Shown here in pieces: positions 6,342 through 61,253 of a DNA stretch of 64,000 nt; the first letter of the stretch is position 1; every line of letters begins with the position of its first letter. Both the position numbers and the translations under genes were made by a program. The DNA lies in the NCBI GenBank assembly GCA_038496445.1, contig JALMLS010000288.1, positions 62,001-126,000 of the forward strand, read 5' to 3'. The DNA comes from Trichosphaerium sp. ATCC 40318 (taxonomy: Eukaryota; Protista; Tubulinea). The notes under the pieces are model-generated. The model searched no databases. It saw nothing but the letters and a program-made list of their open reading frames with translations, and was not told where the DNA came from.

Positions 6342-7319
6342 CTATGGTAAACCTGAGACATTTGGAGTTTTGCACGGATTTTTAAAAAGTACTGTAAGCG
6401 CTTTCCCTGTAACATTCACACATCCTGATATTATAATGTTGTGTACATCTTCTGCAAGTGCCTGTATGCTTACATCTGTTACATCCGTATAACTAAGATC
6501 AATAGTATGTACACCAGCAAGAAGCATTACACTTTCATCAGTAACCTTTAAAGAAGCAAGGCTAATTTTATGAACACCGACAAGTTCTTTTACTCCTTCG
6601 TCAGTTATAGGAGAAGAACGTAGATTCACATCATATGCACCCGCTATATACTTCATTCCTTCATTAGAAATATGTCTGGTATTGGTAAGAGAGATAGTAT
6701 GAACTCCACTTAAGTGCTTTAAGCCTTCATCTGTTACAACAGTGTATCCAATGTTTATCGAGTGTACTCCTTTTAATGACTTCATCCCTTCATCTGTTAC
6801 CTTTGTGCCATAAAGATCTATTGTATGAACACCTGCCAATGCCGACAATCCTTTGTCAGTTATAAAAGTGAAGCTTGCATACAAAGTGTGAATGCCAGAA
6901 AGTGATGAAAACCCTTCATCTGTGATGGACGTGTTCTCTGATATATCAAGTTTATGTATTCCTGCCAGATAGGCTATACCCTCATTAGATATGTAGTCAT
7001 CATTCCACAAGGCAGAGACAGACTTAGCGCCAGAAATAGCTTTCAGAATTTTGTCAATTTTTTTCTTGTTGTGTGCCATCAGCAACGAGTTTTTAATTAT
7101 CGCAGGGTGTTCGCTCAGTGCTTGAGCGTGCTCTAGGCATGTTATTCTGACCTTTTCATAGCCCGTAACGTCATTAATGATAGTGTTAAATAGTTTACAA
7201 GAAAACGACAGTTTCTTCTTTGTTTCATCGTCTGCCGTACTACATATCAAGACATTAATCTCTGGAGGTATGCTGTTTACTGTTAGCGTTGAAGCAGGAG
7301 TCTCTGGTTCCAGTGACAT
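6342..7319 (-). CDS. F-box/LRR protein (intronless, 325 aa)
   Basis: F-box-like VNSIPPEINVLICS...CKLF, then 21-22 aa repeats LxGVHxIxLxxTxVTDEG. Confidence 0.85.
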   Translation of the reverse strand: MSLEPETPASTLTVNSIPPEINVLICSTADDETKKKLSFSCKLFNTIINDVTGYEKVRITCLEHAQALSEHPAIIKNSLLMAHNKKKIDKILKAISGAKSVSALWNDDYISNEGIAYLAGIHKLDISENTSITDEGFSSLSGIHTLYASFTFITDKGLSALAGVHTIDLYGTKVTDEGMKSLKGVHSINIGYTVVTDEGLKHLSGVHTISLTNTRHISNEGMKYIAGAYDVNLRSSPITDEGVKELVGVHKISLASLKVTDESVMLLAGVHTIDLSYTDVTDVSIQALAEDVHNIIISGCVNVTGKALTVLFKNPCKTPNVSGLP

Positions 7320-13702: not shown

Positions 13703-15211
13703 CTAGAAATACACATAATTACGCAACTGGCCATTGTAATGCCATTCCTTACAATGTCCTTGTAGCTTGCCTTTTACAAAATAAGCAATTGTATGCACTA
13801 TCCCATTATTGTGCCATGACTTGTATTCTCCTTCAAGGGTGTCGTTGACATAGTGACAACGCACACTCAATTCACCATTTTCGTACCATGAACTGCATTC
13901 TCCGTTATACGCATTATTGCAACAATTACACTGTTCTTTCAACTTCCCATTTTCATACCATGTTGTGTATACACCTTGTAATTCACCTTTGATGTAATTA
14001 CAGTGCTGTTTCAATTTCCCACTTTCATACCATTTTTGGTATTCTCCTCCACGTGTGCCATTTATGTAGCTATACCTCTCTTTCAAGTTGCCATTTTCAT
14101 GCCAAACGTTGTAGATTCCATTTTTCTTATTGTTAACATAGGAACATTCAATATATTTCGTTCCATTCGTATACCACGACGTATAGGCTCCTTCTTTCCA
14201 ATCTTCAATGTAAAAAGCTTCAACAAATTTTTGACCGTTGTTATACCACTTTTTGTATTCCCCGTGTTTCTCATCATGAAGGTAAAGACAATGTGTCTTA
14301 ATTTGTCCGTTGTCAAAAAAAGATTTACATTCACCATTTCTTTCACCGTTAAGGCAAATGTTGTCTTTCTTTAAGGTACCATCATTATAATACTGTCTTT
14401 GTCTACCACTTTGCTTATTGTTAACATAATATAAATGATGTAACTTCCCGTCAGACAGCCAGTGCTTGAATTCTCCCTCATATTTATCATTCCTTATAAA
14501 ATAATGGTACTCCATGTTACCATTCTGATACCACTTTTTATACTCTCCTTCATTTTTACCATTTTTATACTCTGCAAAGATCCATGGTTGACCGTTCATT
14601 TGACAATTCTTATGCTTTGATTCCATCTTATTGTTTCCATAAACAAACTGCCCGGACCTTGTACGTTCATACCAACTCTTGTAAAATCCTTCAATCTTTC
14701 CTTTTGAATAGAACGCTAGTTCTCTCATGCCACCGCTCTTGTACCACTCCTTGTACTCTCCTTCCAACGAGCCTTTAACATAAGAACCATGTACTTTTAA
14801 TGTACCATTCTTATACCATGTCATGTACATACCTTGCAACAAGTCGTTCTCAAAGAAACAGTTAACTTTCAGTTGTCCATTTTTATTCCATCGTTTATAT
14901 TCTCCATGACGAAGTCCGTTTTTCCAATATTGTTGACACGTGTTTTGAGATGTAACATTGTACAGCACCCATTTATTATGTTTCTCAAAGTTATCATCAA
15001 AACGAGTTGTCGTTGCTGCTTTCTTGGATAGCAAGGGCCATTTTATGTACGTTTCAGTGTCTAGCTCCATAATATCAAGTTGAAGCTCTACAGGAAGCTG
15101 TAACAATAAGTTACAGTCTTTTTTTGGTGTATTGGGCTGTGTCTTTGAAGGTTAGTACAGGTGGTATACACGGTCAATACAAAAGTTTTTTACCTTGCTA
15201 TTGGTTGTCAT
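13703..15211 (-). CDS. F-box + MORN-variant repeat protein with 5' mini-exon
   Basis: Exon 15194-15211 (MTTNSK), intron 15143-15193 (GTAAAA...CTAAC...AAG), then in frame ...LLQLPVELQLDIME and ~17 repeats of GEYKxWYxNGxL. Confidence 0.85.
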
Positions 15212-30733: not shown

Positions 30734-31940
30734 ATGTTAAAAAAAAACTTCTACATCAAATATCAAAGGTAGGCGCAAACTATTCTATAACCTATTCTAA
30801 CCTCACAACAGAACACAGAAAAACTTATTAGACCTCCCTACAGAGATGTTAGCTCATATTTTGCATCAAACAACAATAGCACGATTTGCAGCTTCTGAAA
30901 CATGTCATCGCCTTTGTTCTATCATTCGTGACATTATTGGATACTATGAGGTTTTTATTACAGGTATATCGCAAGCTAGAACAGTTTTGAAATATCCAAG
31001 TACTCTACAAAATACCAAAATCCATGGTAAACGCATTTGTAATGGTATTGCTAAATTATTTGCTGGTGTTCGTGAGATTAATCTTGCTGGTTGTGAAGTA
31101 ACAGATGAAGGGGTAAAAGCACTTTCTGGTGTTCATAAAATATATCTTTCTTTCACTTCAGTGACAGATGAAGGGTTGAAGGCGCTTTCTGGTGTTCATA
31201 CAATTGATCTCAAGTGTTGTAGTAGTGTTACAGACAAAGGGCTAAAAGCACTTTCTGGTGTTCATACAATTTATCTCAGTGGTTGTAGAAATATAACAGA
31301 TGAAGGGTTGAAGGCGCTTTCTGGTGTTCACACAATTGATCTCAAGTGTTGTGGTAGAAGTGTTACAGACAAAGGGCTAAGAGCACTTTCTGGTGTTCAT
31401 AAAATAAATCTTTCTCACACTTATGTGACAGATGAAGGTATGAAGGCGCTTTCTGGTGTTCACACTATACATCTTTGTGGCACTTCAGTAACAGATGAAG
31501 GGTTAAACGATCTATCTGGTGTTCATACCATATATCTTTCTTATGCTTCAGTAACAGATGAAGGGTTGAAGGCGCTTTCTGATGTTCATACAATTGATCT
31601 CAAGTGTTGTAGAAGGGTTACAAATGAAGGGCTAAGAGCACTTTCTGGTGTTCATAAAATAAATCTTTCTCACACTTATGTGACAGATGAAGGTATGAAG
31701 GCGCTTTCTGGTGTTCATACTATACATCTTTGTGGCACTTCAGTAACAGGCGAAGGGTTAAAATATCTCTCTGGCGTTCATACCATTGATCTTTCTAACA
31801 CTTTGGTAACAGATGAAGGGTTAAAGGTGCTTTCTGGTGTTCATGAAATTGCACTCATTGATTGTAACAAATTAACACTTGAAGGGATAAAAGCAGCTCT
31901 TTCTCATGTTAAGCATGTCATAACTAATTTACAACATTGA
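30734..31940 (+). CDS. F-box/LRR protein with 5' mini-exon and 13 LRRs
   Basis: Exon 30734-30768 (MLKKNFYIKYQ), intron 30769-30811 (GTAGGC...CTAAC...CAG), then RTQKNLLDLPTEMLAHIL (F-box) and LSGVHxIxLxxxxVTDEGLKA repeats. Confidence 0.88.
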
Positions 31941-33564: not shown

Positions 33565-34605
33565 TTAGCACAGATGTACGTTCAGACATTTAGCTTCCAG
33601 AGCTTCTATACATTTTTTTGTAACTAAGGATCTAGTTAGATAAACTGTATGAATGCCATCAAGTACATCAACCAATGTCTTATTAGAGATACTTTTACAA
33701 CATTCAAGGTTAATAGTATGAACTCCTTTTAGTGCTTTTAGGGTGTAACCTTTAACTTTGTTACAGCCAAAAAGGTTAATATTGTGAACTCCGCCAAGTG
33801 CTTCAATACCTTCATCAGTCACTTGAGTGTATCCTAGGTTGATTTTATGAACGCCTTTTAAAGCCTTAACACTTTCATCTGTGACTCGTATACAACCAAA
33901 AAGGTTAATACTGTGAACTCCAGACAATGCCTTAATGCCTTCATCAGTCAACTGGTTACAACCATAAAGGCAAATGGAGTATACGCCTTTAAGTGCTTTG
34001 ATGCCTTCATCTCTAATTTGATTGCAGTTTTCAAGGTTTATAGTATGGACGCCTTGAAGCGCCTTTATACCTTCATCTGTCACGTGGTTACAATTACCCA
34101 AATCAATTGTTTTAACACCTGCAATTTCTTTCAAATCATCATCACTTATTGTACCCAAAAACGGTTTTTTAATGTTACTGCATCCAGCAAGTAAAGAGAA
34201 TAATGTATATTTTGGGTTCATAGCGCATAATACTATAACACTATTATTCATTATGCCGTTGTACTGTCTTATCTTTAAGATATCTGGATATCGCCTGAGA
34301 TATACTTTTTTATATCCAACAACTTGATGAATGATATCAGCCATCAAATGACATGACTGAGCAACTGAGAATCTATCCTTTGACTCGGTATGACGTAGAA
34401 TATTTGAGATAACTTCAGGAGGGAAATCCGTTACATTTTGTTCGTTTGCTGCTGTCAATTGGTGTCTTTTTGTAAAAAGTTAGTCGAAACGCAATGTCAC
34501 TGGTACGTACTCTCTTGTTTGTTGTTGTTTGGGTAATTTAAAGTCTAATTGAGGTAGGGTGTGTTGATTAATTGTATTTGACGTTGTTTTAGCGTGCGCT
34601 AGCAT
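33565..34605 (-). CDS. F-box/LRR protein with upstream exon (start uncertain)
   Basis: Intron 34466-34510 (GTACGT...CTAAC...AAG) joins ...LPKQQQTRE in frame to HQLTAANEQNVTDFPPEVISNIL (F-box), then ALxGVHxINLxxCxxVTDEGIK repeats. Confidence 0.85.
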
Positions 34606-35065
34606 AAACTTGTTTATTTGTTGTTTAAGACTCTTGTTGGAATTATTTATGATAGTCTCGAGTTGTGCTTTGAACTTTTGGTCTTGTTTTGCTACAAAAA
34701 CCGCATCCGTGTTACCCTTCCTGTTGTAGAGAACTTTTTGTAATGTAGTTGAGTACAAATGTTCGCTTAGGAACAAAATATTAAGGCATATGCCGTAGTA
34801 CTAGGAAATTCCTGATGATAATTTTCATTCGATGAAAAAGTTTATAAAAGCCAAAGTCATTTTAATGGTGTTTACTATACTATTTTAACATTGTTTCACG
34901 AAGAAACAGTTTCAACGCAAAAGTGTTTTGGGCAACGCAAATACATTTCACTATATCTGAAAGGGTGTACCACAAAACTGGATACCCAATTTTATATCGG
35001 CATGACGCGCAACTGAGACATTTCTATGCGTAGATAAGGAGTTACATCGTTTATTGTCAATTGAT

Positions 35066-35307
35066 TGTAAAAAGTTAGTCGAAACGCAATTCATTCACGT
35101 ACTCTCTATTTTGTTGTTTGGTAAAAGTCTAATTGAGGTGGTGTGGTTGATTAATTGTATTTGACGTTTTTTAGCGTGCGCTAGAATAAACTTGTTTATT
35201 TGTTTTCGACTCTTGTTGGAATTATTTATGATAGTCTAAGTTGTGCTTTGAACTTTTGGTCTTGTTTTGCTACAAAAACCGCATCCGTGTTACCCTTCCT
35301 GTTGTAG
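35066..35307. repeat. Degenerate direct duplicate of 34472-34728 (upstream exon and intron of the neighbouring F-box/LRR gene)
   Basis: Shared runs gttagtcgaaacgcaat and agttgtgctttgaacttttggtcttgttttgctacaaaaaccgcatccgtgttacccttcctgttgtag, with small deletions in this copy. Confidence 0.85.
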
Positions 35308-35619
35308 TATTTGAGTACTTGCTGTAATGATATGCCAGGGAAATCCATGAGTGAATACTGTATCTGAGAAGAAACAACAGCCGTGTCGACTTAGGAACAA
35401 AAAGTAATTAAGGCACTTATTCTTTTGATAAGAGTGATCATGACAGCGTTTACTCCCTATCTACGAAATATGGTTACTGTAGAACCTTATAAAATGCGCT
35501 CAACCGTCAGCCTGAAGGCCTTGGGCTAATATATGGGGTATAAATACAAGTGATTGCACGTGATGAGTGAACATTAAGTCAACATAAGTGTAAAGTGTAT
35601 GTTTATTGAGGTGAGATGG

Positions 35620-38600
35620 TTAAAATTCTATTTTTGAACCACGGTCGAGATCATAGAGATTCCAATGATCTGCACCGTTTCTTGGAGTTATTGGACCACA
35701 GCCATTACAGCAAGAGTGTTTGGTTGCGCAATAGCAGTTAAACCATTCAGTTCCGCCTGTCCAGACAACATCTGAACAGTCTGGATCACGTGCAGCTGAA
35801 AAGGCGCAATCACCTGGAAAATGACGACCTGCCCAACGTTCATATCTACCACGCATAAAGAGCTGCTTGGTACAAATGCTCTTGTCGCCGCATGTTGCTG
35901 AATGAAATGAACATCTCTTCGTTTTTCTTTGGTTGATGAGTTTCGGAGGATTAAAAGGAGGCGTTGTCACTGGCCTAATAGAACAATCTCTGCAGTCATT
36001 TGTTAATGGCCATTGAGGAATACGTGTCACGTTTTTGTTCAAGTTCATGGCGTTGCATGAAATACATTGTTTGCCATGACGCCAAGGAATATCTTGATGA
36101 GGTTTTTCGGCTTCAAAACCAGGAAAGTTTCGTGTGTTTGCTTTGATGTAACAAGTCGATCCATAAGCTGGATCTCCTGGTAGAACAATTTCGTATCTGC
36201 CAAGTGTTTCAGTTGGGTTTCTGCTTCTAACTGTATAGCACATGTCAACTTCAGTGAGGGGCTCTTTGAAATCTCTCCTGTTAATAACTGATTTGCACCA
36301 GTCCGGAATAATGTCAGCTTCGTTTGTGAACTTATTGCTGACTTCTCGTTTCATTACCACAAATCCACTACAAACACTCGCTGTACAGTTACGCTCACAA
36401 TAGCCTAGGTTATTATACACAGATCCACATCCTAAATAGTGTCAGCACTGATGTATATGTTCAGACGATAAGACAAAAGTGACCAATTTATACATGTGGT
36501 TTAGAATGACAGCAGGTAAAAACGTACCTAAAATTGCACGTGGATTTGGGAAGTAGCAATGATCGATTCTACTAAAGGTAGGTGTAAGTGATACTGGTAA
36601 ACCATTGAAAAAAGGTATTAAAAGAGATACGCACAAAAAGCTGCTCGCGCCAGTTGGCAAACCATAAAGATGTTGTACTGGGTTTCGCACCAAGTGTACA
36701 TCAATACAATCTCTGTATCCGCGCCAAAGCCACTGAATAACATATCCTCCTAGTCCACCTCTACCAGGCATCTTAATTTTAGCCATATCAACATCGAAAG
36801 GTCTGTGGGTAAAATGTGGGAACTTGAAGATAGCTTCGATCCATGGCATTGAAGGGTTGGTGTATTCAACAAAAGCGTCTTGAATCAAGTTGCTCTTATA
36901 CTTAAACAGTTTTGCATCACCACCCCATACTCCGAAAGCTTCTGGTCTTGGAACGAAATTCGGCGAATTTTCAGCAATAGCAGGTTCATAGAAATCGAGA
37001 CGGTAGTCTGGACCATTACGGTTTTGTAGTCTTCTGTGGTATACAGGAACTGTTTTTTTTGCATTGTTTGGAGCTTCTCTGATGTACTTCTCCATCAAGT
37101 CGAACGATACTTCCTTTAATCTAGGCTCATCCTTTTCGTGTACAAAGACATAGTAAGAATCCTGTGTATGCCCTGTTGACCATTCAAGCTCAAACTCTTG
37201 ATTTAAACCAACTTGAACATGAGGAGCTGAGAACAAACGTGGAGGACAAGGTGTATCTGTGCTGGCTACGTTGACCGCTCTACTTCTACTCGTCATCCAG
37301 TTATGAGCCAAAGTTCCAGTAGGCATCAGAACAAGTGCCAGTAGTGATAACAGCAACACCATCGAGAAATTCGTCTTAAAAGCCTTACCAAACACAAAAA
37401 TAGCGAACAACATCATAAGAGTTGAAGCACTTGACTTTGATGCAGGGGAGGTAGCAGCCGCTCTAGCACCAATTTGAGTTTGACCAGGTTTAGCAGGAGG
37501 TAGAGTTCTACGTAGACACTTGCACATTCGACGCCTACAACAAAAATAAGCAAGAAACGTCTAAGAAAAAACCCAGAAATTATGAATGTACCCTTCTCTG
37601 GATCCTGCCTTAGCATCGCATGTCATAATTCTTCCACTGCATCTTGTGTCATCGTAATAGCACATATTTAGTATACTTGTGGTAGCTCCGGTTTGTACGC
37701 AGTTGCTCAGGTAAGGAGGGAAACAAACAAAGTTGCCTTCTTTTTCTACTAAGCTTTTGATTCTATCAGGGCTGTTGACTCTTTCCATATGCACCCTGTC
37801 ACAAGATAGGTTCTCTCGCTCACAACGTTCTGTACATGACTCTCCTCTCTGTTATAAAAAATTAGAAACAGCACATCTTAGTCACGTGGGTGTATTTTAG
37901 CGTACGTTTGACCTGAACCATGTTGTTGTAAGTTTAGTCTGTTTAGATTCTCTGAGCTTCAACGGACCATCAGATCCATTTGGCCACCAAAAAGCGCCTT
38001 CGTTTGCTTCACCTTGTTTGATCAAAGCGTGGAATGTAACAGTGCCAGTGCCCTTAGGAGGCGCACGCCATTTAAATGTTGTTGATACAGGCTTCAATAT
38101 ACCACCATAATGCATTAAACTTTGGCGACATCTGTGATTGTCTGGATATGGAAGCTGAAAAAGCGCTAAAATAACAACTTAGCAAAAAAGATACAAAAAA
38201 AGAGCAAAACCGCAAATGGGATCACTTTGGTTACACGTGCTGGTTATTTCCAAAATACTTACGTGTATTGTCGTCAGGTAGAATCCATTCACCAACTCGA
38301 TCTCCTCTTGGCCCTTGAGCATACATGAGCAGGCCTCGGTACTTGTAACTGTAGCTTGTAATGTCGAGAGATATATCCATAATTGTATTAGGAATATATG
38401 CAGTTAGCTTGTTGTCTTCGCTTCCAGCGTATGTTATATATTTATCTGAGGGCACAACCTTTGATGCCCAATGCATGTACGGTACAGGATCAGCGTTACA
38501 AACAAGTCTATCAATTCTGTTGTTCCTTCCAACCCTTCTCCAATCTTTTGGATCGCAACCCCAACGACTCGCTGAAGCGTCACAGTCGGGTACACTAGAT

Positions 38601-38671
38601 GTCGGTCTTGAGGCGGAGTAAGCAAGGGCTATGAGACTGAAAAAGAGTAAAGTATAGTACACCGTAAACAT
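35620..38671 (-). CDS. Secreted multidomain (poly)protein: signal peptide, Reeler, Cys-rich domain, hydrophobic anchor, internal signal peptide, LPMO-like domain, PAN/Cys-rich tail
   Basis: In-frame GT-AG joins at 38263/38165, ~37906/37848, ~37592/37534 and ~36529/36431. Reeler motifs YRGLLMYA, VGEW, MH...K...FKWRAP..GTGTVTFHA. LPMO-like HNWMTSRSRA...PCP...WSTGH...YVIQWLWRGYRDCIDV. Confidence 0.8.
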
Positions 38672-40983
38672 CCTTTAAGCACGTGGCTGACTATTAGCGA
38701 TTCGAACTTGAAATAAAATAAAAGGATTTACCTCACTGAGTATGAGAAGTTGCTTGCGTTGTATGACTATTTTGAAATGACTTATGTACAACCACAAAGT
38801 ATGTGCACTGCTTTAAGTAACGCGGTTACCTACTCGCGAGTGTACTAACACTAGCGAGAGCATTTCTTTTTCTCTGCGAACGGCTACGATACTGTTTTTT
38901 AGGGAGCATACAGCTATTTTTGTTTGAACAACACGTGAATTGTGAACAAAAGTATTTCGGATATAGTTTTACCGAGAGCGTGACTAGCGCAAAGTTAAAG
39001 TTTATAAACTGAAGATTTATGTCCAGGTATGCTTATTACAGGTACCGTATAAAACCACGTGACAGATTAACTGTTCGGAGGTAAACTTGCTTTACTAAGA
39101 CTCTTAGTCTATCAGCAGTGTATCCACAGTGCCGTAATAAACCGTACAACTATATTCGCACGTACTTTCGAGTGTGAGTTAAAATTGTGTGTTGGAACTT
39201 TCTTTCTATTATAACTCACCTTTTGTCTTTATAATTTCTACTACGAGTGTTGGTATTCATCTACAACTCGCAAAAAAGTGTAGGTACCAAAAAGGCCGAA
39301 AATTTACGGACATTATAGTGTGAACAACTTCGAGAGTGGAGCAATCCTAACGCGATAGTGCCAGATTTTGGGAAATATTAGAAAACCAGTGAACACTAAG
39401 TGTTTTTTTGGGCACGGAAATAATGTTAGAACACTGGTTCTGGTGTAAGCGCTAGGCGTCTTAGAGTAGTTGATTGTTCCACCAAAACTCAGGGATTACC
39501 CATTTTAAACAAGCTGATGGCAGGGCTAGATAGTCAGGGCGAACTTCTTAGGTCGGAAAAAAGAAACCCCAACTCACATTCATCTTCGCTCTCCTTTTTT
39601 TTTCAACACTTGTGCAACATAAACTCGCTCTGCTGTTCACTTGTAGAAAAAGAACTTGTACATAACAATCAGTGCCACTGTTGCGACTAAGTTGAAGAAT
39701 AGCAATTTTATTTATAGTGTTATCTTCTACAGCGATACGTATAAACTCTTGACATTGTTGTGTAAACGTCAGAAAAGCGAAGTTTCCTTGTTGAGAATAG
39801 AATTAAACACAGTCTCGTTTTCAAAGGAGATTATAACTCTGGATAATTAAAACAATGTGATGTTAATAGGCACTGGTTCGTTAGAGAATATGATGTTTAG
39901 ATTGTCGAATGTAGCATTGACAGGAAGTGTCTCAACAATTGACGTGATGACTAATCTAAATACCACAGGTGCTATCGTACTTCAAGATGGCTGTAAAGCT
40001 GGTTCCACTGGATGAGGTGTGCGTGAGAAAACGCCACTTGATTCATCATAAAAGATAATATTGGACGTATTATCTGCAAACAACAAAGTAACCTGCTGAA
40101 GATACCGAGTTATTAGACGCCCTCTTCGAACGGTTATGCTTCTGAAACACGTACTGTAACTACACTCTGAGTTGTCCTATAAAGCACTCAATTCAGTTAT
40201 ATTAGAACTACCTGGGGTATTCTGCGTATATGTTATCAAGAAAAACGTTCTAGAAACAATGTTAAAAGTCATCAAAAGGTTTCGATCTTGTACTTTGTAG
40301 GCACGGATTGTCAGTTTTGGTCCTTGTTCTGCAGAAACGACTAATACATGTTCATCTATTGCTGTTCCTAGTGCAAGAACATAAGATACATGAGGGGTTT
40401 AAGTACTAAAAGCGTTTTGTATCCCTAAAAAAAAAGGCTACTATGGCACAGTTTTGTGATTCCTTAAACGCATCTACACCGGTGTAGATTTGTACTTTAA
40501 TCTAACAATTTTTGTTATGGTACTATCAGTATCCCCACGTTACACGAGGCATCGCTCAGCTAAGAGTCTGTTTTTACAGAACCAAGTGATACAAGAGAGG
40601 TCGGAATGTTAAGTTTTCGTTTTTCAGCTAACCCAAAGTATCGAAATATCCTATTAGTGCATCTTTGTGGGTTAAGATGAAAACGTCACGTGCTTGCTAC
40701 TAATCAGGAGTTACCTTGAATTCTTCAGGGTTGAAAATAGGTGCTACACTATGAGCATAAGGTACTACACATTGAGAGCGGCAGGTACAACTCCTGTGCA
40801 AGCCCTTTGTTAGCAACGATGTATGTGCTTACCTTAAATTGGGTCATTCAGTACAATACAGTCTGTCTAAATGTGATCATATTTAGTGTAGAACTTTGAC
40901 TTAATTAAGCTTTGTTACTTAGTTTCAAAAAAGCGATACTCTAAGCCAGCAACCAGCTCTCTAATTTTTGATACGCCTGTTGA

Positions 40984-41676
40984 ATGGAACAAAACAGATC
41001 GATGGCGGATGTGTATAGCTGTTTTAACGTTTTACATCTTCCTATGGAGATACAACTTGATATTATGGATCTAGACTTGGAAATATTCACAAAGTGGCCA
41101 CTGTTATGCAAACGTTCAGCATTTACAACAAGATTTGATAGTGAGTTAAATAAACACGGTAAATGGAAGACAAAAAGAAGAAAGTACAACAGATTCTTTA
41201 TTTCTCATTGGGAACATGGTAGACTTCATGGAGGGTACATAACGTACATAAATGGGCAATTGGATGAACTAACCACTTTTGTACATGGTAACCAAGAAGG
41301 AGAGAACAAGAGATGGTATGATAATGGTCAATTGAAGCAGCTGTGCTACTATCTTAATAATAAGCGGGAAGGAGTCTACAAAGATTGGTATGCCAATGGT
41401 CAGCTGAGGTCACAGTGGACTTATATCAATGGCAAACGGGAAGGAGATTGCAAAGGGTGGCATTGTAATGGAAAGTTGCGAACATTGTGCTACTACAATG
41501 ATGATTCACTTGAAGGAGAGCACAAGAAGTGGTATGATAATGGACAATTATATGAATTGTACTGTTATGTAGATGGCATAAGGCATGGGCAGTTCATATC
41601 ATGGTACCGTGATGGTCTTCCACGTGAAAAGGGTATTAATAAAAATGGGGAAGAAATATCCGTTACCTTTCTTTAA
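40984..41676 (+). CDS. F-box + MORN-variant repeat protein (intronless, 230 aa)
   Basis: VLHLPMEIQLDIMD...KWPLLCK (paralogue of 13703-15211); repeats EGxxKxWYDNGQL. Confidence 0.85.
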   Translation: MEQNRSMADVYSCFNVLHLPMEIQLDIMDLDLEIFTKWPLLCKRSAFTTRFDSELNKHGKWKTKRRKYNRFFISHWEHGRLHGGYITYINGQLDELTTFVHGNQEGENKRWYDNGQLKQLCYYLNNKREGVYKDWYANGQLRSQWTYINGKREGDCKGWHCNGKLRTLCYYNDDSLEGEHKKWYDNGQLYELYCYVDGIRHGQFISWYRDGLPREKGINKNGEEISVTFL

Positions 41677-45577: not shown

Positions 45578-46756
45578 TTAACATAACCTCAAGTTACACA
45601 CACAAAAGCGAGGTTCATATACAAACCTTATTACTGGTAAGTATTCTGTATCTGTGTAAACAAAAGCTCCATCAATAGCATCAATTGTAACATTCTGACA
45701 ACTTGTAACATTAATTATTCTGACACCAGTTAATGCCCTAACACCATCATCTGTAATATTACACTTTGCAAGGTTAATTGTATGAACACCAACCAACGCT
45801 TTGACGCCTTCATCTGTAACTTTTGTCTTGCAAAGGTTAATTGTATGAACACCAGCTAGTGCTTTAACACCTTTATCTGTAATGTGTATACAGTATGATA
45901 AATCAATAGTATGAACACCTGCCAATGCTGTAATACTCTTATCAGAGACATAGTCACAACGCCTTAAATGGATTTCATGAACGCCAGCCAGCGCTTTAAC
46001 ACCATCACCTCTAATATCATTATAGCTTAAACTAACAGTATGAGCACCAGCCAATGCTTTAACACCTTTGTTTGTAACATCACAACTGTCCAAATTAATT
46101 ATATGTACACCTGCTAATGCCTTAGCACCTTTATCTGTAACATGTTCACACCCTTTCAAAAAAATGGTATGAACTCCTGCCAAAGGTATGATGCCATCAT
46201 CTGTAATGTGTACACATTCTGTTAAATCAATAGAATGTACTCCAGCCAAAGCTTTCACGCCATCATCTGTGATGTGTTTACATTCTGATAAATTGATTGT
46301 ATGAACACCAGCCAAGGCTTTAATACCTTCATCTGTGACATGTATACATTCTGATAAATTAATTGTATGAACACCAGCCAATGCTTTCACACCATCATCT
46401 GAAATTTGTATACATTCTGATAAATCAATAGTATGAACACCTGCCAATGCTCTAACACCATTGTTGGTAATATCCTCAATTCCTGATAAACGAATTGTAT
46501 GGACACCTGCCAAAGCTTTAAGAACAGCATCATTAGCACCCCATAAATTAATAGTATGAACACCAGCTAAGCAGCTAATATTATCATCAGATACAAGTGT
46601 ATGACAAAGATTGATGGTGTGAACGCCAGATAAAGCTCTAATACTGTCATCTATTTTTTCAAGTCCCCACAAATTTATCTCATGAACACCAGCCAGTGCT
46701 TTAATACCTTCATCTGTAAGGACTGTGTTACAAGATATATCAATTGTATGGACACC
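45578..46756 (-). pseudogene. Headless LRR array (~17 repeats) lacking ATG and F-box
   Basis: The open frame starts right after TAG at ~46757 with GVHTIDISC..., mid-repeat; repeats ALAGVHTIxLSECxxITDDGVK. Confidence 0.7.
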
Positions 46757-47011: not shown

Positions 47012-47695
47012 CTAAGTCACAGTAAGCCTAACCACACTTTTGTTGTTTGAAATTGTGACAGTGGTGACGTTTTTTTTGACAATTGTGTGAATACCAGATA
47101 ATGCTTTGAGAACATTGTCTGTAATACATGGACAAAAACTCAAATCAATTTCATGAACGCCTGATAGTGATTTAATACCTTTTGCTGTAACACGTGTGCA
47201 AAAGCTTAAGCCAATCGTGTGAACGCCAATTAATGATTTAATACCTCGATCTGTAACCTTTGTTCCATTTAATATGATTTTATGAACTCCAGAAAGTTGT
47301 TTAAGATGGTCATCAGTCAGTAAGTGACAAAAGCTAAAGTCAATACTATTGACTGTCCTAAAGTCTGTAAAGTCTACTTTTCTAATATCACGTGTTTTGA
47401 GAGCATACGCTCCTTGTAAATACCTAAAGTGTTTTTGTTTTAGGGGGAAGTTGAGTACTATTTGAGTTGTCTTGATGAGATGTGGTGATTGTTTGTAAAG
47501 TTGTTTCAGTTCTTTTTTCGTTTTAACCAGAGTAGTTGCCCTTTTGAGTTCATATCCCAAGTACTGTGTTGCTACATTTGATAATATTTTACACGTACAT
47601 ACAACTGAATGCATAGATAACGTTGAAACAAATTGTAGAACGATAATTATGATTTCTACAGGAATCTCATCAAAGAATGCGCTGTTTGAGTTCAT
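47012..47695 (-). CDS. F-box/LRR protein (short)
   Basis: MNSNSAFFDEIPVEIIIIVLQF...VVCTCKIL, then ~5 LRRs LSGVHxIxLSFCxxxTD. Confidence 0.8.
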   Translation of the reverse strand: MNSNSAFFDEIPVEIIIIVLQFVSTLSMHSVVCTCKILSNVATQYLGYELKRATTLVKTKKELKQLYKQSPHLIKTTQIVLNFPLKQKHFRYLQGAYALKTRDIRKVDFTDFRTVNSIDFSFCHLLTDDHLKQLSGVHKIILNGTKVTDRGIKSLIGVHTIGLSFCTRVTAKGIKSLSGVHEIDLSFCPCITDNVLKALSGIHTIVKKNVTTVTISNNKSVVRLTVT

Positions 47696-48062
47696 TTTAC
47701 TTTCTAATACTAATAATAGGAGAGACGAGTAGCCACGTGTTATTTGTAGTTTTACCAAGTGTTCACTTAACGTTTAAACGATTTTTGAAAAATCACGTTT
47801 TTTTTTTTGGTCTTGCCACAAGTGGCGACCTTGTGTAAGATCTTTAGAGAGCTTTAATTACTTGGACGTGCATAAGGTCAAATCCTTTCGCACGTCATAC
47901 TCCCATTCTCGTTTCCTCAATCCCACCTGCCCTGAAACTATTCTCAAATCCGCTTCTTTGAGATCCCGCTGACACTTGAGATGAGAGCATTCGGTGTATC
48001 TAGTTGAGGAACTATTGTAAGTTCTACTGTTGGCGGCCTTGTTGTTTTGGGAGGATCAATCC

Positions 48063-51140: not shown

Positions 51141-52076
51141 ATGGAACAAAGGCTAAACACATCAATTATACACCAATACGACAATAATAGCATCAATAGT
51201 ACGTTCGATCTTACAGCACTACCAGTTGAAGTTATCGTTCATATTATGAACTGCGGCAAGTTTACCCTCCGTTCAGCCCAAACGTGCCATTTCTTGCATG
51301 ATATTATCCATAAACACGTCGGTTATGGCAAAATATGCGTCGAAACTCAAAACGAAATATCTATGCTTTCCGGAAGCCCTCTGCTTAAAAATACAGCAAT
51401 TCTTTTCAGGACAACCTTCAAAGACAATGTTACAGACAGTCAACTACACTTACTTCAAGGTGTGAGAACTATCGACTTGCGTCGCTGTAAACAAATAACG
51501 TATGATGGTGTAAAGGCGTTAGCTGGTGTTCATGAAATTGATCTTGGCTACAATCAACTAATAACAGATGAGGGTGTTCAAGCGTTATGTGGAGTACACA
51601 CAATTGATTTATCATTCACTAATATTACAAACAAGTGTCTGAAAGCTTTAAAAGGAGCTCATACTATCAACCTGGGGTATTGTGAAGGAATAACAGATGA
51701 TGGTGTCAAAGAGTTGGCAGGTGTAAAAGATATTGATTTATCAGGTACTAAGATTACAGATGAGTGTTTGCAGGCATTATGTGGTGCAGATAGGGTTATA
51801 TTGCAACGCACAAACATCACCAACAAAGGTATGAAGTTATTGAAAGGAATAAGGATAATTGACATATCATTTTGTGAATATGTAACAGATGAAGGTGTTT
51901 CTAACCTTGATGGTGTTTCAATGCTATTTGTAATGTACTGTCCAAATATTAATGGTGAAGGTTTACTTGGACTTAAGAGTGAGACGTCTGTGTTCTGTAA
52001 AGTTGATAAATTAAACCCAACAGTGGTTGAGACACTTGAAAGTAAGGGTGTAGATGTCTTTGAAATTTATGGATAA
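51141..52076 (+). CDS. F-box/LRR protein (intronless, 311 aa)
   Basis: DLTALPVEVIVHIMN...AQTCHFL (F-box) plus LRRs; AATAAA just after the stop. Confidence 0.88.
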   Translation: MEQRLNTSIIHQYDNNSINSTFDLTALPVEVIVHIMNCGKFTLRSAQTCHFLHDIIHKHVGYGKICVETQNEISMLSGSPLLKNTAILFRTTFKDNVTDSQLHLLQGVRTIDLRRCKQITYDGVKALAGVHEIDLGYNQLITDEGVQALCGVHTIDLSFTNITNKCLKALKGAHTINLGYCEGITDDGVKELAGVKDIDLSGTKITDECLQALCGADRVILQRTNITNKGMKLLKGIRIIDISFCEYVTDEGVSNLDGVSMLFVMYCPNINGEGLLGLKSETSVFCKVDKLNPTVVETLESKGVDVFEIYG

Positions 52077-58091: not shown

Positions 58092-58838
58092 ATGAACTAT
58101 TCATCGATTCTACTCTGTCTCTGCTTTTCATTAGCACTGGCCTTCAACTACAAAGCCATTACTATCAACGCTCACAACACTTGTTCTGGCTGTCGTAAGG
58201 ACATGCATGCCGGTGAATTTGTGTACTGCGATGGTTCTGTTCCCGGATCAACGGTAACACACTGCAGTTGGGTTGGCGGTTCTGGAGAATGTTCCTTCCC
58301 TCGAGATACCTCAGTTACAAAAGCTCAATGTGAACAACTATGTAATGCAGACGACCGCTGTAATTACTACACATCCTACTACGGAAGTGTATGCAACCTA
58401 TTCTACATGACCAGCTGTTCAAACGATTACAGTCAAGCACCCGGAGATACATACGAGAAGGTTACTAGCGAGAACACAATGATAATGACAAAGACAAAGA
58501 GCGGCCAATACCATGGAACAAATGCTCCAATTAAGTACCGATATGCTTACACCGATGGAACCTACTCTCCTTACAGCGCTGCTCTCGAAGATCCCCGAGT
58601 CAACGAGTTCCAATCAGGTGCTGTTGATGTATTCTACATGGTCGCACCTGCAAAGAACAAAGACAAGACACTTCAAGGTGTTGAGATGAAAATATTCGCA
58701 AACGATGGCTGGGAGTTCTCAGAAGTTCAAATCTTTAACTCTTTTCATTTCTGTTGGAAAGGCGATGCTGCTATCCACCCTCTTACTACTGCAAGTGTTG
58801 TACTGCCTCTCAACGGCGATTGTAATGCCTGTACCTAA
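58092..58838 (+). CDS. Secreted Cys-rich protein with PAN/apple-like and PLAT/LH2-like domains (intronless)
   Basis: Signal peptide MNYSSILLCLCFSLALA; TKAQCEQLCNADDRCNYY...CNLF (PAN-like); TK...GTNAPI...NEFQSGAVDVF...DGWEFSEVQI (PLAT-like). Confidence 0.75.
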   Translation: MNYSSILLCLCFSLALAFNYKAITINAHNTCSGCRKDMHAGEFVYCDGSVPGSTVTHCSWVGGSGECSFPRDTSVTKAQCEQLCNADDRCNYYTSYYGSVCNLFYMTSCSNDYSQAPGDTYEKVTSENTMIMTKTKSGQYHGTNAPIKYRYAYTDGTYSPYSAALEDPRVNEFQSGAVDVFYMVAPAKNKDKTLQGVEMKIFANDGWEFSEVQIFNSFHFCWKGDAAIHPLTTASVVLPLNGDCNACT

Positions 58839-60263: not shown

Positions 60264-61253
60264 TTAGTACATATTTACGCCCTTACTTTCAAGTGCAGTA
60301 ACAACTGTCGTCTTTAATCTACTAGCAGTGCAAATCACTTTGGTCAAATTATTAAGCCCAAGCAAACCATCACCATTAATATTTGGACAGGACATCATAC
60401 ATAGCATTGAAACATCATCAAGGTTAGAAACACCTTCATCTGTTACATATTTACAAAATGATATGTCAACAATCCTTATTCCTTTCAATAACTTCATACC
60501 TTCGTTGGTGATGTTTGTGCGTTGCAATATAACCCTATCTGCACCACATAATGCCTGCAAACACTCATCTGTAATCTTAGTACCTGATAAATCAATATCT
60601 TTTACACCTGCCAACTCTTTGACACCATCATCTGTTATTCCTTTACAATACCCCAGCTTGATAGTATGAGCTCCTTTTAAAGCTTTCAGACACTTGTTTG
60701 TAATATTAGTGAATGATAAATCAATTGTGTGTACTCCATATAACGCTTGAACACCTTCATCTGTTATTAGTTTATTGCAACTAAGACCAATTTTATGAAC
60801 ACCAGCAAATAGCTTTACACATTTATCTGTGACCCCTGTTGATGCCAAATTAATCTCTTGTACACCAACCAACGCCTTTACATCATCATACGTTATTTGT
60901 TTACAGCGACGCAAGTTGATAGTTCTCACACCTTGAAGTAAGTGTAGTTGACTGTCTGTAACATTGTCTTTGAAGGTTGTCCTGAAAAGAATTGCTGTAT
61001 TTTTAAGCAGAGGGCTTCCGGAAAGCATAGATATTTCGTTTTGAGTTTCGACGCATATTTTGCCATAGCCGACGTGTTTATGGATAATATCATGCAAGAA
61101 ATGGCACGTTTGGGCTGAACGGAGGGTAAACTTGCCGCAGTTCATAATATGAACGATAACCTCTACTGGTAGTGCTGTAAGATCGAATATACTACGATTG
61201 ATGTCATTATCGTCGTATTGATGTATACTTGACGTTTCTAGCCTTTGTTCCAT
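60264..61253 (-). CDS. F-box/LRR protein (intronless, 329 aa), recent paralogue of 51141-52076
   Basis: Identical F-box/linker protein segment; one extra LRR (GVQEINLASTGVTDKCVKLFA). Confidence 0.88.
   Translation of the reverse strand: MEQRLETSSIHQYDDNDINRSIFDLTALPVEVIVHIMNCGKFTLRSAQTCHFLHDIIHKHVGYGKICVETQNEISMLSGSPLLKNTAILFRTTFKDNVTDSQLHLLQGVRTINLRRCKQITYDDVKALVGVQEINLASTGVTDKCVKLFAGVHKIGLSCNKLITDEGVQALYGVHTIDLSFTNITNKCLKALKGAHTIKLGYCKGITDDGVKELAGVKDIDLSGTKITDECLQALCGADRVILQRTNITNEGMKLLKGIRIVDISFCKYVTDEGVSNLDDVSMLCMMSCPNINGDGLLGLNNLTKVICTASRLKTTVVTALESKGVNMY

Follow-up and report, generated by a model that had tools for sequence, protein, structure and literature searches.

The gene at positions 35620-38671 on the minus strand of the window (the whole 64,000-nt stretch of Trichosphaerium sp. 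ATCC 40318 DNA analysed here) raises the question of whether a single cellular mRNA can give rise to two secreted proteins, a Reeler-domain surface protein and a candidate histidine-brace protein of the LPMO type, through an internal signal peptide. All features described below are located on the minus strand. A six-exon splice model (38671-38263, 38165-37906, 37848-37592, 37534-36635, 36571-36528 and 36431-35620) yielded an ORF of 2682 nt (893 codons plus stop) with zero internal stops, interrupted by five introns of 97, 57, 57, 63 and 96 nt that all begin with GT and end with AG. The continuous ORF that an earlier note on this DNA had obtained by splicing by hand was borne out, with the 893-aa frame being collinear from end to end with intron-free, transcript-derived homologues. 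The single intron given in that note (37591-37535, 57 nt) proved correctly placed and generates the in-frame junction SREG/RRMCKC on splicing, but is only one of five. No gaps were observed at any of the exon junctions in the alignment to intron-free homologues, and a 976-aa metatranscriptome protein is collinear with residues 3-893 of the spliced product. The sole minus-strand AATAAA within positions 35,600-38,711 (35602-35607) lies 13-18 nt past the stop codon, so that none is found between the Reeler module and the downstream module, which begins with the residues HNW and is referred to as the HNW domain.

Translation confirmed the order of modules that had been proposed, from the signal peptide through to the His codon at 37305-37303. 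The protein starts with an N-terminal signal peptide (MFTVYYTLLFFSLIALAYSA, 38612-38671) that has its hydrophobic peak at residues 9-15 and an equivalent leader in homologues. It is followed by a Reeler-like module (residues ~25-223, 37906-38599) spanning the intron at 38262-38166 and assigned by homology to Pfam-positive relatives. The Reeler domain postulated in the earlier note was not recovered above the cut-off from the window itself, as the exon-2 piece alone matches Pfam Reeler (PF02014) weakly (13.4 bits vs a cut-off of 21). The assignment as Reeler-like is based on homologues that pass the cut-off (P0008 with 36.3 bits, P0029 with 34.2, P0109 with 40.2 and P0187 with 35.3) and align with the N-terminal module of the window protein (E 1e-20 to 1e-61; P0008, P0029 and P0109 at E 1e-30 to 1e-41). 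Apart from this match and chance matches, Pfam searches with the separate exon translations returned nothing. The N-terminal partners of some homologues contain plastocyanin-like cupredoxin or DOMON domains. Downstream of the Reeler-like module, a Cys-rich domain (residues 224-315, 37516-37848) spans the intron at 37591-37535, ends in RRMCKC and retains its Cys positions in homologues. In P0014 and P0109, a weak Pfam match to the C-terminal end of Glyco_transf_18 falls in this region. A Ser/Ala/Pro-rich linker identified in the translation (residues 316-345, 37426-37515) leads up to the internal junction.

At this junction, a hydrophobic stretch of 10 residues (LMMLFAIFVF, 37390-37419), resembling the tail of a GPI signal or a short stop-transfer segment, is followed by a basic loop (GKAFKTNFS, 37363-37389) that is equivalent to the n-region of an internal signal, and then by a signal-peptide-like segment of 19 residues (MVLLLSLLALVLMPTGTLA, 37306-37362) that ends in TLA and has its predicted cleavage site after Ala385. 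With regard to a possible GPI signal, an S/A/T/G-rich stretch is followed by the short hydrophobic core, which is not C-terminal in the translation product. The HNW domain has 411 representative homologues (clusters at 50% identity), the best 150 of which were scored at the junction. The motif H(N/Q)W...R was carried by 126 of them, directly after an N-terminal signal peptide in 36 cases and internally in 90. Position -1 is occupied by A, G or S and position -3 by A, V, T, S, C or G in every one of the 90 internal copies, 97% of which show a hydrophobic core before the His. A second hydrophobic stretch is located upstream in 76-83 of the 90, and the loop between the two stretches, with a median length of 8.5 residues, contains more K+R than D+E in 82. 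The 14 residues that precede the first hydrophobic stretch comprise 21% S, 14% A, 8% T and 8% G. This first core has a median length of 14 residues (range 10-16), below that of a typical membrane helix, whereas the internal signal has a core with a median of 12 residues and a c-region with a median of 5. Judged by these dimensions, the internal segment has the geometry of a signal peptide and not that of a membrane helix. Both the n-, h- and c-region layout and the upstream hydrophobic segment, as expected for a polyprotein processed by signal peptidase, are present at the level of sequence. A few homologues, such as P0045, lack the first hydrophobic stretch and are not explained by this simple topology. 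To our knowledge, the production of two proteins by way of an internal secretion signal is rare for cellular genes.

A search among homologues for the combination of a hydrophobic pair with HNW had been suggested; the full in-frame order of Reeler module, short hydrophobic stretch, basic loop, signal-peptide-like segment and HNW recurs in 78 of the 90 internal-type proteins. Homology to the Reeler module was detected in the upstream part of 78 of the 90, which are less than 50% identical to each other. The predicted internal-signal layout was thereby confirmed as common to about 80 distantly related sequences of microbial eukaryotes and as not attributable to chance. The tree of the domain shows at least 11 switches between the N-terminal and the internal form, with close and well-supported sister pairs consisting of one of each. 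The fused homologues include ORFs from Trinity transcripts of Flabellula baltica and Cavostelium apophysatum and one MMETSP0437 transcript. An uninterrupted, intronless fused ORF of 1245 aa was found on a 20-kb genomic contig, and the metatranscriptome contigs that encode fused homologues only slightly exceed the length of the ORF. In the internal copies sampled, the internal signal does not open with a Met, which makes their separate translation impossible. Most family members originate from protist transcriptomes and metatranscriptomes, with only two amoebozoans and one acantharian as named sources of relatives. The short introns and the exclusively protist nature of the named relatives mark the window as non-human DNA. 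The Trinity ORFs of F. baltica and C. apophysatum stem from cultured amoebae. No description of the HNW family or of the Reeler-HNW fusion was found in open-access text.

The HNW domain (residues 386-600, 36661-37305) was delimited as a candidate histidine-brace, LPMO-like domain on the basis of the 411 homologues, an AF2 model and profile alignment against AA10 with hhalign. Its first residue, His386 (codon 37303-37305), is the predicted residue 1 of the released chain and pairs with His1 of AA10. As had been anticipated, a His directly after the predicted cleavage site was conserved in 129 of 129 aligned domains, a count that has to be read in the knowledge that the HNW motif had itself served to select these domains. 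His431 (domain position H46, 37168-37170) in the sequence WSTGH, the candidate second brace His, is located outside the selection motif and was likewise invariant (129/129). The candidate axial Tyr, Tyr582 (domain Y197, 36715-36717) in GYRDCIDV, was Tyr in 119 and Phe in 6 of the 129 domains. Cys405 (C20, 37248-37246) and Cys585 (C200, 36708-36706), which together span positions 36706-37248, covary, with both being Cys in 94 domains, neither in 28 and only one in the 7 mixed cases; a disulfide between them would tie the N-terminal segment to the last strand. The 36 free-standing relatives have the same His directly after an ordinary N-terminal leader, in which position -1 is small and position -3 either small or short aliphatic. 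By prediction only, removal of the signal peptide would expose this His as residue 1 of the mature chain. Downstream of the domain lies a C-terminal Cys-rich region (residues 609-893, 35623-36634), which spans the introns at 36634-36572 and 36527-36432, occurs in fused and free-standing homologues and gave no Pfam match. The window copy ends without the last ~70-residue Cys-rich tail (CCS...GPPC) seen in homologues, and neither tblastn nor three-frame reading of positions 35,700-34,400 detected a downstream exon encoding it.

Whether the HNW domain is LPMO-like, as the earlier note had proposed, was assessed by comparison of sequences, profiles and structural models. No Pfam family reached its threshold for the HNW domain, no LPMO family did so in any of the 62 members searched, and neither phmmer nor profile searches returned a relevant match among PDB chains. 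The search of a protein collection with the family profile retrieved further family members only, none with an LPMO Pfam domain. A word-indexed protein search with region 75-297 of the 361-aa exon ORF gave no matches, not even to the window's own protein, so that this collection probably lacks the window genome. The AF2 model of the domain, which is beta-rich with two helices, reached a pLDDT of 91.3 and a pTM of 0.89; prediction from the single sequence was unusable (pLDDT 31.7). The structural check suggested previously thus provided a confident model, but Foldseek detected nothing at E<1e-3 in PDB or BFVD, and AA10 LPMOs (9i1u_A, 5wsz_A) and fusolins (4yn2_A, 4yn1_A) appeared in PDB only at E ~0.07-0.08 with TM values of 0.2-0.3. 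The outcome for BFVD was similar. Both groups were over-represented among the weak PDB matches, in which the top positions were taken by generic Ig-like sandwiches (PrgB, the Grhl2/p53 DNA-binding fold and the N-terminal domain of GH123).

Profile alignment was performed with hhalign against 108 AA10 domains that were confirmed as Pfam LPMO_10 and whose diversity is limited because they had been fetched by an N-terminal motif pattern. The overall alignment (P 2.3e-4, probability 45%) placed His1 on His1 and Y197 on the axial Phe of the AA10 motif aFY.viDV, with the C-terminal segment giving P 1.4e-5 and a probability of 80%. The controls were all worse, with reversed profiles giving P 0.56 and 0.17 and 30 column shuffles never falling below 0.03 and 0.012. 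For the second-His segment, the best local match puts H46 on the second His of AA10 and is not significant when taken alone (P 0.19); for the N-terminal segment alone, 1 of 30 shuffles scored better. The sole LPMO-family match among the 62 members was that of P0030, which aligns over positions 52-131, the part containing the second His, with Pfam AA9 (PF03443) at E 0.0047 and 17.3 bits, below the cut-off of 27.8. The claim of an LPMO-like domain draws on the profile match to AA10 and on the pattern of His1, second His and axial aromatic residue; Pfam, PDB and Foldseek gave no significant match. A distant relationship to LPMOs is partly supported, being favoured by the sequence profiles. Since no LPMO-family match exceeded the threshold, an assignment to AA9 or AA10 would not be justified; the domain would at best represent a separate family that is absent from Pfam and distantly related to both.

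Taken together, the gene probably encodes a precursor that signal peptidase splits in two, the one part being a Reeler protein that stays anchored and the other a candidate histidine-brace protein from a hitherto undescribed family. The N-terminal signal peptide would bring the Reeler-like and Cys-rich modules into the ER, where the short hydrophobic stretch would stop translocation and leave the basic loop in the cytosol. The second hydrophobic segment, which has the size of a signal peptide, would restart translocation, and signal peptidase would then cut after Ala385 to produce a downstream chain with a free His start (HNWMTS...). This chain would consist of a beta-rich domain with the invariant His1 and His46 and Tyr/Phe at position 197 in an LPMO-like layout, would most likely bind copper via a histidine brace and may have oxidative activity. 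The Reeler product would remain on the membrane, either through the hydrophobic hairpin left behind or through a GPI anchor attached at the Ser/Ala-rich site before the first stretch.

Three other explanations were weighed against this one. If two adjacent genes or transcripts were present, a Reeler gene would extend to ~37,390 and an HNW gene would begin with Met367 (37362), and splicing by hand would have created the continuous ORF. In the window, the internal signal indeed opens with a Met, and a consensus-like donor (G/GTAAGG) is located at 37389/37388, but a stop codon, an AATAAA and a spacer are all absent between the modules. The earlier note had named two separate transcripts as the finding that would speak against its reading; instead, the same in-frame fusion was found in 78 of the 90 internal-type homologues, assembled transcripts included, and the sampled copies lack that Met. 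A search for free-standing N-terminal modules also turned up four proteins only, two of which are truncated fusions. The existence of two genes is accordingly rated as highly improbable, and a single ORF and a single mRNA that spans both modules are strongly supported by the sequence evidence. A scan of the junction for bacterial promoters and terminators was discarded as irrelevant, the gene being eukaryotic.

The remaining alternatives accept the single ORF and differ in the fate of its product. In an uncleaved membrane protein, a hydrophobic hairpin would hold both the Reeler and HNW modules outside the cell, and the conserved His would be internal and serve a role other than that of an N-terminal brace. 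Two adjacent hydrophobic segments with a basic loop between them would also be expected of a helical hairpin, and Foldseek gave no significant LPMO match. Such a protein is considered quite unlikely, given that the two cores (median 14 and 12 residues) are short for membrane helices, that a 5-residue c-region follows the second core and the residues at -1 and -3 fit in 90 of 90 copies, that cleavage is the default for the 36 relatives with their His after an ordinary N-terminal signal peptide, and that the N-terminal and internal forms are close sisters on the tree. It is also conceivable, albeit unlikely, that the domain is released His-first without being a copper LPMO-like protein, and is instead a beta-sandwich domain for binding or adhesion or holds another ligand or metal. 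Its likeness to LPMO motifs would then reflect convergence or a distant ancestry without shared chemistry. This notion is in line with the generic Ig-like sandwiches among the leading Foldseek matches, the Pfam LPMO families that all stay below threshold and the overall hhalign probability of less than 50%. It is opposed by the H1/H46/Y(F)197 pattern, by the collinear AA10 profile match above all controls and the AA9 match, and by the cupredoxin and DOMON domains in some partners.

The preferred reading, signal-peptidase cleavage of a single precursor, can be extended to a more specific form that is regarded as possible, if somewhat doubtful. A GPI signal and an internal signal peptide, placed back to back, would yield a GPI-anchored Reeler partner and, in a 1:1 ratio to it, a soluble copper monooxygenase belonging to a new LPMO family, as a natural cellular counterpart of viral glycoprotein polyproteins. 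Signal peptidase and GPI transamidase would together release both products. At the cell surface, the Reeler-type partner would position or power the enzyme, in a family that is widespread in free-living protists, and partners with cupredoxin or DOMON domains could act as electron donors in some lineages.

The resemblance to characterised copper enzymes is incomplete. Like AA10 LPMOs (Pfam LPMO_10), exemplified by the chitin-binding protein of Serratia marcescens (locus L045), the predicted mature chain is His-first after its signal peptide, starts with H-x-x-x-x-(S/P)-x-S-R, carries the second His in a W..T(A/G).H....Y(Y/F) context and has a C-terminal hairpin G.(Y/H)(V/I)(I/V)..W...(Y/F)..C/v.DV with the axial aromatic residue. 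In contrast to AA10, its second His is situated 45 instead of ~85 residues past His1, the long loop that precedes this His in AA10 is missing, and an insertion of ~130 residues with two helices follows it. Moreover, the HNW domain is hosted by protists, is followed by a large Cys-rich region and has no Pfam LPMO_10 or significant Foldseek match. Fungal AA9 LPMOs are similar to P0030 over the second-His part, but the score is below the cut-off and limited to one member, and does not denote family membership. AA9 enzymes have Y-x-x-C after the axial Tyr, a motif also present in the HNW domain. The fungal X325/Bim1 proteins, which are LPMO-like copper proteins with an extracellular domain of the histidine-brace type, suggest a possible role in copper handling rather than polysaccharide cleavage. 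They may be alike in the association of such a domain with a GPI-anchored surface protein; in X325, it is the brace domain that carries the GPI anchor and its precursor is an ordinary one, whereas the anchor-like signal described here belongs to the upstream partner. Reeler-DOMON-cytochrome b561 proteins (FRRS1/SDR2) are comparable in that Reeler and, in some HNW members, DOMON or cupredoxin modules are found beside the candidate copper domain; they differ in that cytochrome b561, DOMON and cupredoxin domains are all absent from the window protein. In the pair formed by cellobiose dehydrogenase and LPMOs, the DOMON-like cytochrome of the former acts as an electron-transfer partner of the latter, and by analogy it may be speculated that the Reeler, DOMON and cupredoxin modules serve as extracellular electron-transfer partners.

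With regard to the junction, the closest parallels are viral envelope polyproteins (flavivirus prM/E, bunyavirus Gn/Gc and alphavirus E2/6K/E1), which are cleaved by host signal peptidase at internal signals and have the same series of stop-transfer segment, basic loop in the cytosol, internal signal and small-x-small site. The plan is also alike, as one translation product gives two lumenal proteins, with cleavage being predicted in the present case. Unlike these polyproteins, the genes described here are cellular, intron-containing protist genes that combine a Reeler-type surface protein with an enzyme-like domain and do not encode virion glycoproteins. A GPI-signal-like element in the middle of a protein, with a small-residue site, a short hydrophobic stretch and a second secreted protein after it, also occurs in the DAF-hGH chimera, in which an internally placed GPI signal directs anchoring and the hGH signal peptide could replace the hydrophobic domain (Caras 1991; PMC2288913). 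That chimera is an artificial construct, whereas the arrangement reported here is natural and conserved, with GPI addition being putative.

If the preferred reading is correct, the HNW proteins, with 411 clusters at 50% identity, form a large family of candidate histidine-brace copper proteins that had not been filed before and would extend LPMO-type chemistry to groups hardly studied for LPMOs and raise the question of the substrate, be it prey walls, polysaccharides of cysts or tests, or copper taken up by the cell. Cellular genes would then be able to use the internal-signal device of viruses to make two secreted proteins per mRNA, and would have kept it across ~80 diverged lineages, with many interconversions with the ordinary form that has an N-terminal signal. 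The constant pairing with a Reeler-type module, sometimes with cupredoxin or DOMON, would offer a testable way into two matters, the still obscure function of Reeler domains and the redox partners that LPMO-like proteins have in nature. A second product of this predicted kind will be missed by gene-calling and secretome-prediction programs that search for signals at N-termini only.

The window gene occupies positions 35620-38671 on the minus strand and was modelled with six exons (38671-38263, 38165-37906, 37848-37592, 37534-36635, 36571-36528 and 36431-35620). Joined, these give an ORF of 2682 nt (893 codons) free of internal stops, and all five introns are of the GT...AG type, with lengths of 57-97 nt. 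Intron 37591-37535 and the junction ...SREG/RRMCKC were reproduced by splicing and translation as the earlier note had given them, and translation likewise confirmed the order of features it had described, from the signal peptide to the domain opening at His386 (HNW domain). The N-terminal signal peptide (38671-38612) is followed by a module of ~200 residues, a Cys-rich domain with RRMCKC at its end and a Ser/Ala/Pro-rich linker. After a first hydrophobic stretch of 10 residues (LMMLFAIFVF; 37419-37390), the loop GKAFKTNFS and an internal signal-like segment (MVLLLSLLALVLMPTGTLA; 37362-37306), the HNW domain begins with HNWMTSRSRA (His386, 37305-37303). It contains a second His in WSTGH (37170-37168) and the Tyr of the motif GYRDCIDV (36717-36715); a further Cys-rich region of 285 residues lies C-terminal to this motif, again on the minus strand. 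The best HMMER match is collinear with the window protein over residues 3-893, and six intron-free homologues align to it with no gaps at any of the five exon junctions. The C-terminal Cys-rich tail of the relatives (DPxC...CCS..C...GPPC) is absent from the window protein, which ends ~70 residues before them, and no exon for it was found in the 1.2 kb downstream of the gene. A consensus-like splice donor, G/GTAAGG, is present within exon 4, where the first hydrophobic stretch ends (37388-37392, minus strand); if used, it would alter the reading of the junction, and splicing at this site finds no support among the homologues.

With the domain starting at His386 as query, a full HMMER search for homologues matched 411 representative proteins at E <=1e-3 and 220 at E <=1e-10. 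Many long matches align from query residue 1, the His itself, which corresponds to position 320-400 of a protein of 900-1400 residues, and other family matches start at query residue 15-25. Fused homologues derive from independent types of source: they occur on contigs that scarcely exceed the ORF (e.g. a 2931-nt gene on a 2994-nt contig), among the Trinity transcripts of two amoebae, Flabellula baltica and Cavostelium apophysatum (labelled as a complete ORF in C. apophysatum), and in an MMETSP0437 transcript. The fused homologue P0045 is an unbroken ORF of 1245 aa (L003:10001-13738), set among compact neighbouring genes on a genomic contig of 20 kb. A single ORF on one mRNA is thus documented in relatives of the window gene. 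For the window gene itself it is the only consistent reading, because no stop, spacer or poly(A) signal lies between the modules; the sole minus-strand AATAAA within 35,600-38,711 is located 13-18 nt past the stop codon. The earlier proposal of a single spliced gene is therefore supported by the continuity of the window ORF together with transcript-derived and genomic fused homologues.

The junction was analysed in the best 150 of the 411 relatives, requiring H(N/Q)W with an Arg no more than a few residues further on. This motif was found in 126 of the 150, at most 45 residues from the N-terminus in 36 proteins and internally in 90. A His right behind the predicted cleavage site, whose conservation the earlier note had made a point of, is kept in all 129 domains of the family alignment, the rows having been picked by the HNW motif itself. 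Among the 90 internal copies, the residue at position -1 relative to the His is Ala (72), Gly (10) or Ser (8), position -3 is invariably A, V, T, S, C or G (90/90), and a strongly hydrophobic core lies within -22 to -4 in 97%. With a median core of 12 residues and a 5-residue polar end, this second hydrophobic segment has the dimensions expected of a signal peptide and not those of a membrane helix. A further hydrophobic stretch lies upstream of it in 76-83 of the 90 copies (median core 14 residues, preceded by a Ser/Ala/Thr/Gly-rich stretch), and in 82 of the 90 Lys plus Arg outnumber Asp plus Glu in the intervening loop. In the internal copies inspected, the internal signal does not open with a Met, and their downstream part could therefore not be translated alone.

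A FastTree phylogeny of the HNW domain was calculated from 33 complete forms with an N-terminal signal and 82 internal forms. Parsimony required 19 switches between the two arrangements, at least 11 of which are forced by well-supported branches. Close sister pairs with one N-terminal and one internal member (P0028/P0029, P0068/P0085, P0034/P0037 and P0150/P0177) differ in their leader sequences, and the short forms are therefore no truncated assemblies of the long ones. Most simply, these patterns are read as a functional equivalence of the internal segment and the N-terminal signal: the internal segment would be removed to leave a mature chain beginning at the His.

In the proposed mechanism, the N-terminal signal would bring the Reeler module into the ER, where the short first hydrophobic stretch would halt transfer and leave the basic loop in the cytosol. 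The second segment would then restart translocation, and cleavage by signal peptidase after Ala385 would free a soluble chain with the His at its start. The Reeler product may either retain the hairpin or exchange it for a GPI anchor attached at the Ser/Ala-rich site; a GPI signal at an internal position is functional in a DAF-hGH chimera (PMC2288913). We infer cleavage, anchoring, copper binding and activity alike from sequence features and comparison. A minority of homologues lacking the first hydrophobic stretch do not fit this simple topology; P0045, for instance, has one hydrophobic segment before the HNW domain and a highly charged linker in place of the other.

The HNW domain found no matching Pfam family or PDB chain in sequence searches. 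Conservation was determined in an alignment of 129 HNW domains, numbered from His386 (H1). Every domain has His at position 46 (H46), and position 197 is occupied by Tyr in 119 domains and by Phe in 6. W3 and R9 do not vary either, partly as an effect of the selection motif, which contains both. Cys20 and Cys200 occur together in 94 domains and are both missing in 28, with 7 mixed cases; their covariation is best explained by a disulfide that would link the N-terminal segment to the last strand. A confident AlphaFold2 model based on a 62-sequence alignment (pLDDT 91.3, pTM 0.89) comprises about eleven strands and two helices. Foldseek returned nothing at E<1e-3 in PDB or BFVD; the weak matches are Ig-like sandwiches, and the top 50 PDB matches include two AA10 LPMOs and two fusolins (E 0.07-0.08, TM 0.2-0.3).

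For comparison with AA10 enzymes, bacterial genes with an AA10-type N-terminus were taken from a genome collection and 108 distinct mature domains were aligned, three members of the set being confirmed as Pfam LPMO_10 (145-170 bits). The profiles were compared by hhalign, with a reversed profile and 30 column shuffles as controls. The whole HNW profile matched AA10 with P 2.3e-4 and a probability of 45% (reversed 0.56; shuffle minimum 0.03), pairing His1 with His1 and Tyr197 with the Phe in the aFY.viDV motif of AA10. The last 40 residues gave P 1.4e-5 and a probability of 80% (reversed 0.17; shuffle minimum 0.012). The first 24 residues matched best at AA10 positions 1-23, with a P of 0.005 that was beaten by one shuffle, and residues 25-62 placed H46 on the second AA10 His with a P of 0.19, which alone is not significant. 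A single family member, P0030, shows a sub-threshold match to positions 52-131 of Pfam AA9 (E 0.0047). The HNW domain thus has the His, His, Tyr/Phe layout in common with AA10, with detectable collinear profile similarity, but belongs to none of the existing LPMO sequence families. The earlier designation as an LPMO-like enzyme stands in part: the His1/H46/Tyr-Phe layout and the AA10 profile similarity speak for it, and the lack of Pfam, PDB and significant Foldseek matches speaks against it. We regard the domain as a candidate LPMO-like protein that resembles AA10 in layout and profile and may do so in fold, and consider a histidine-brace copper site its most likely function, with somewhat better than even confidence.

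Homology to the N-terminal module of the window protein (approximately residues 8-320) was detected upstream of the junction in 78 of the 90 internal forms, and seven of the other 12 are N-terminally truncated fragments with fewer than 115 residues before the His. Free-standing copies of this module were also searched for; no more than four proteins came up, and two of these are truncated fusions. Its earlier assignment as a Reeler domain is supported through homologous modules that exceed the Pfam cut-off (22-40 bits); the match of the window protein itself stays below threshold. In some homologues, further domains follow the Reeler module ahead of the junction: DOMON (P0014, P0024), a plastocyanin-like cupredoxin (P0187, P0009) or thrombospondin type-1 repeats (P0109). 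Cupredoxin and DOMON domains are extracellular electron-transfer modules, and their presence in some partners would fit a redox role of the Reeler/HNW pair, without proving it.

Full-text searches of the open-access literature retrieved no description of the HNW family and nothing that ties an LPMO or histidine brace to Reeler domains, internal signal peptides or amoebozoans, and Pfam (2025 copy) holds no model for the family. The chemistry that the HNW domain would share with LPMOs, if confirmed, is of a known kind, and processing at an internal signal is already known from viruses; new here is the combination of both features as a conserved cellular gene family.

The window has a G+C content of ~37% and is DNA of a microbial eukaryote, not of human. 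Most of the remaining long ORFs are LRR_6 and MORN_2 repeat genes that lack introns. Repeat-protein genes are located at 6342-7319(-), 30846-31940(+), 33565-34458(-), 45578-46672(-), 47012-47758(-), 51141-52076(+) and 60264-61253(-), as well as at 13703-15106(-) and 40984-41676(+). They are intronless and have a similar N-terminal leader in common, one group containing LRR_6 repeats of 24 residues (GVHTIDLS...) and the other MORN_2 repeats. Surrounding the intron-containing window gene, they look like a lineage-specific expansion. The ORF at 58092-58838(+) encodes a Cys-rich protein of 248 aa with a signal-peptide-like N-terminal leader and no Pfam match. Just downstream of the window gene, an intergenic stretch contains a perfect 69-nt direct repeat (34661-34729 and 35239-35307, spacing 578 nt), whose flanks also appear duplicated in translation. 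The LRR genes at 51141-52076(+) and 60264-61253(-), which lie ~8 kb apart in opposite orientation, share 81% protein identity and differ by one 21-residue repeat unit, which points to a recent inverted duplication.
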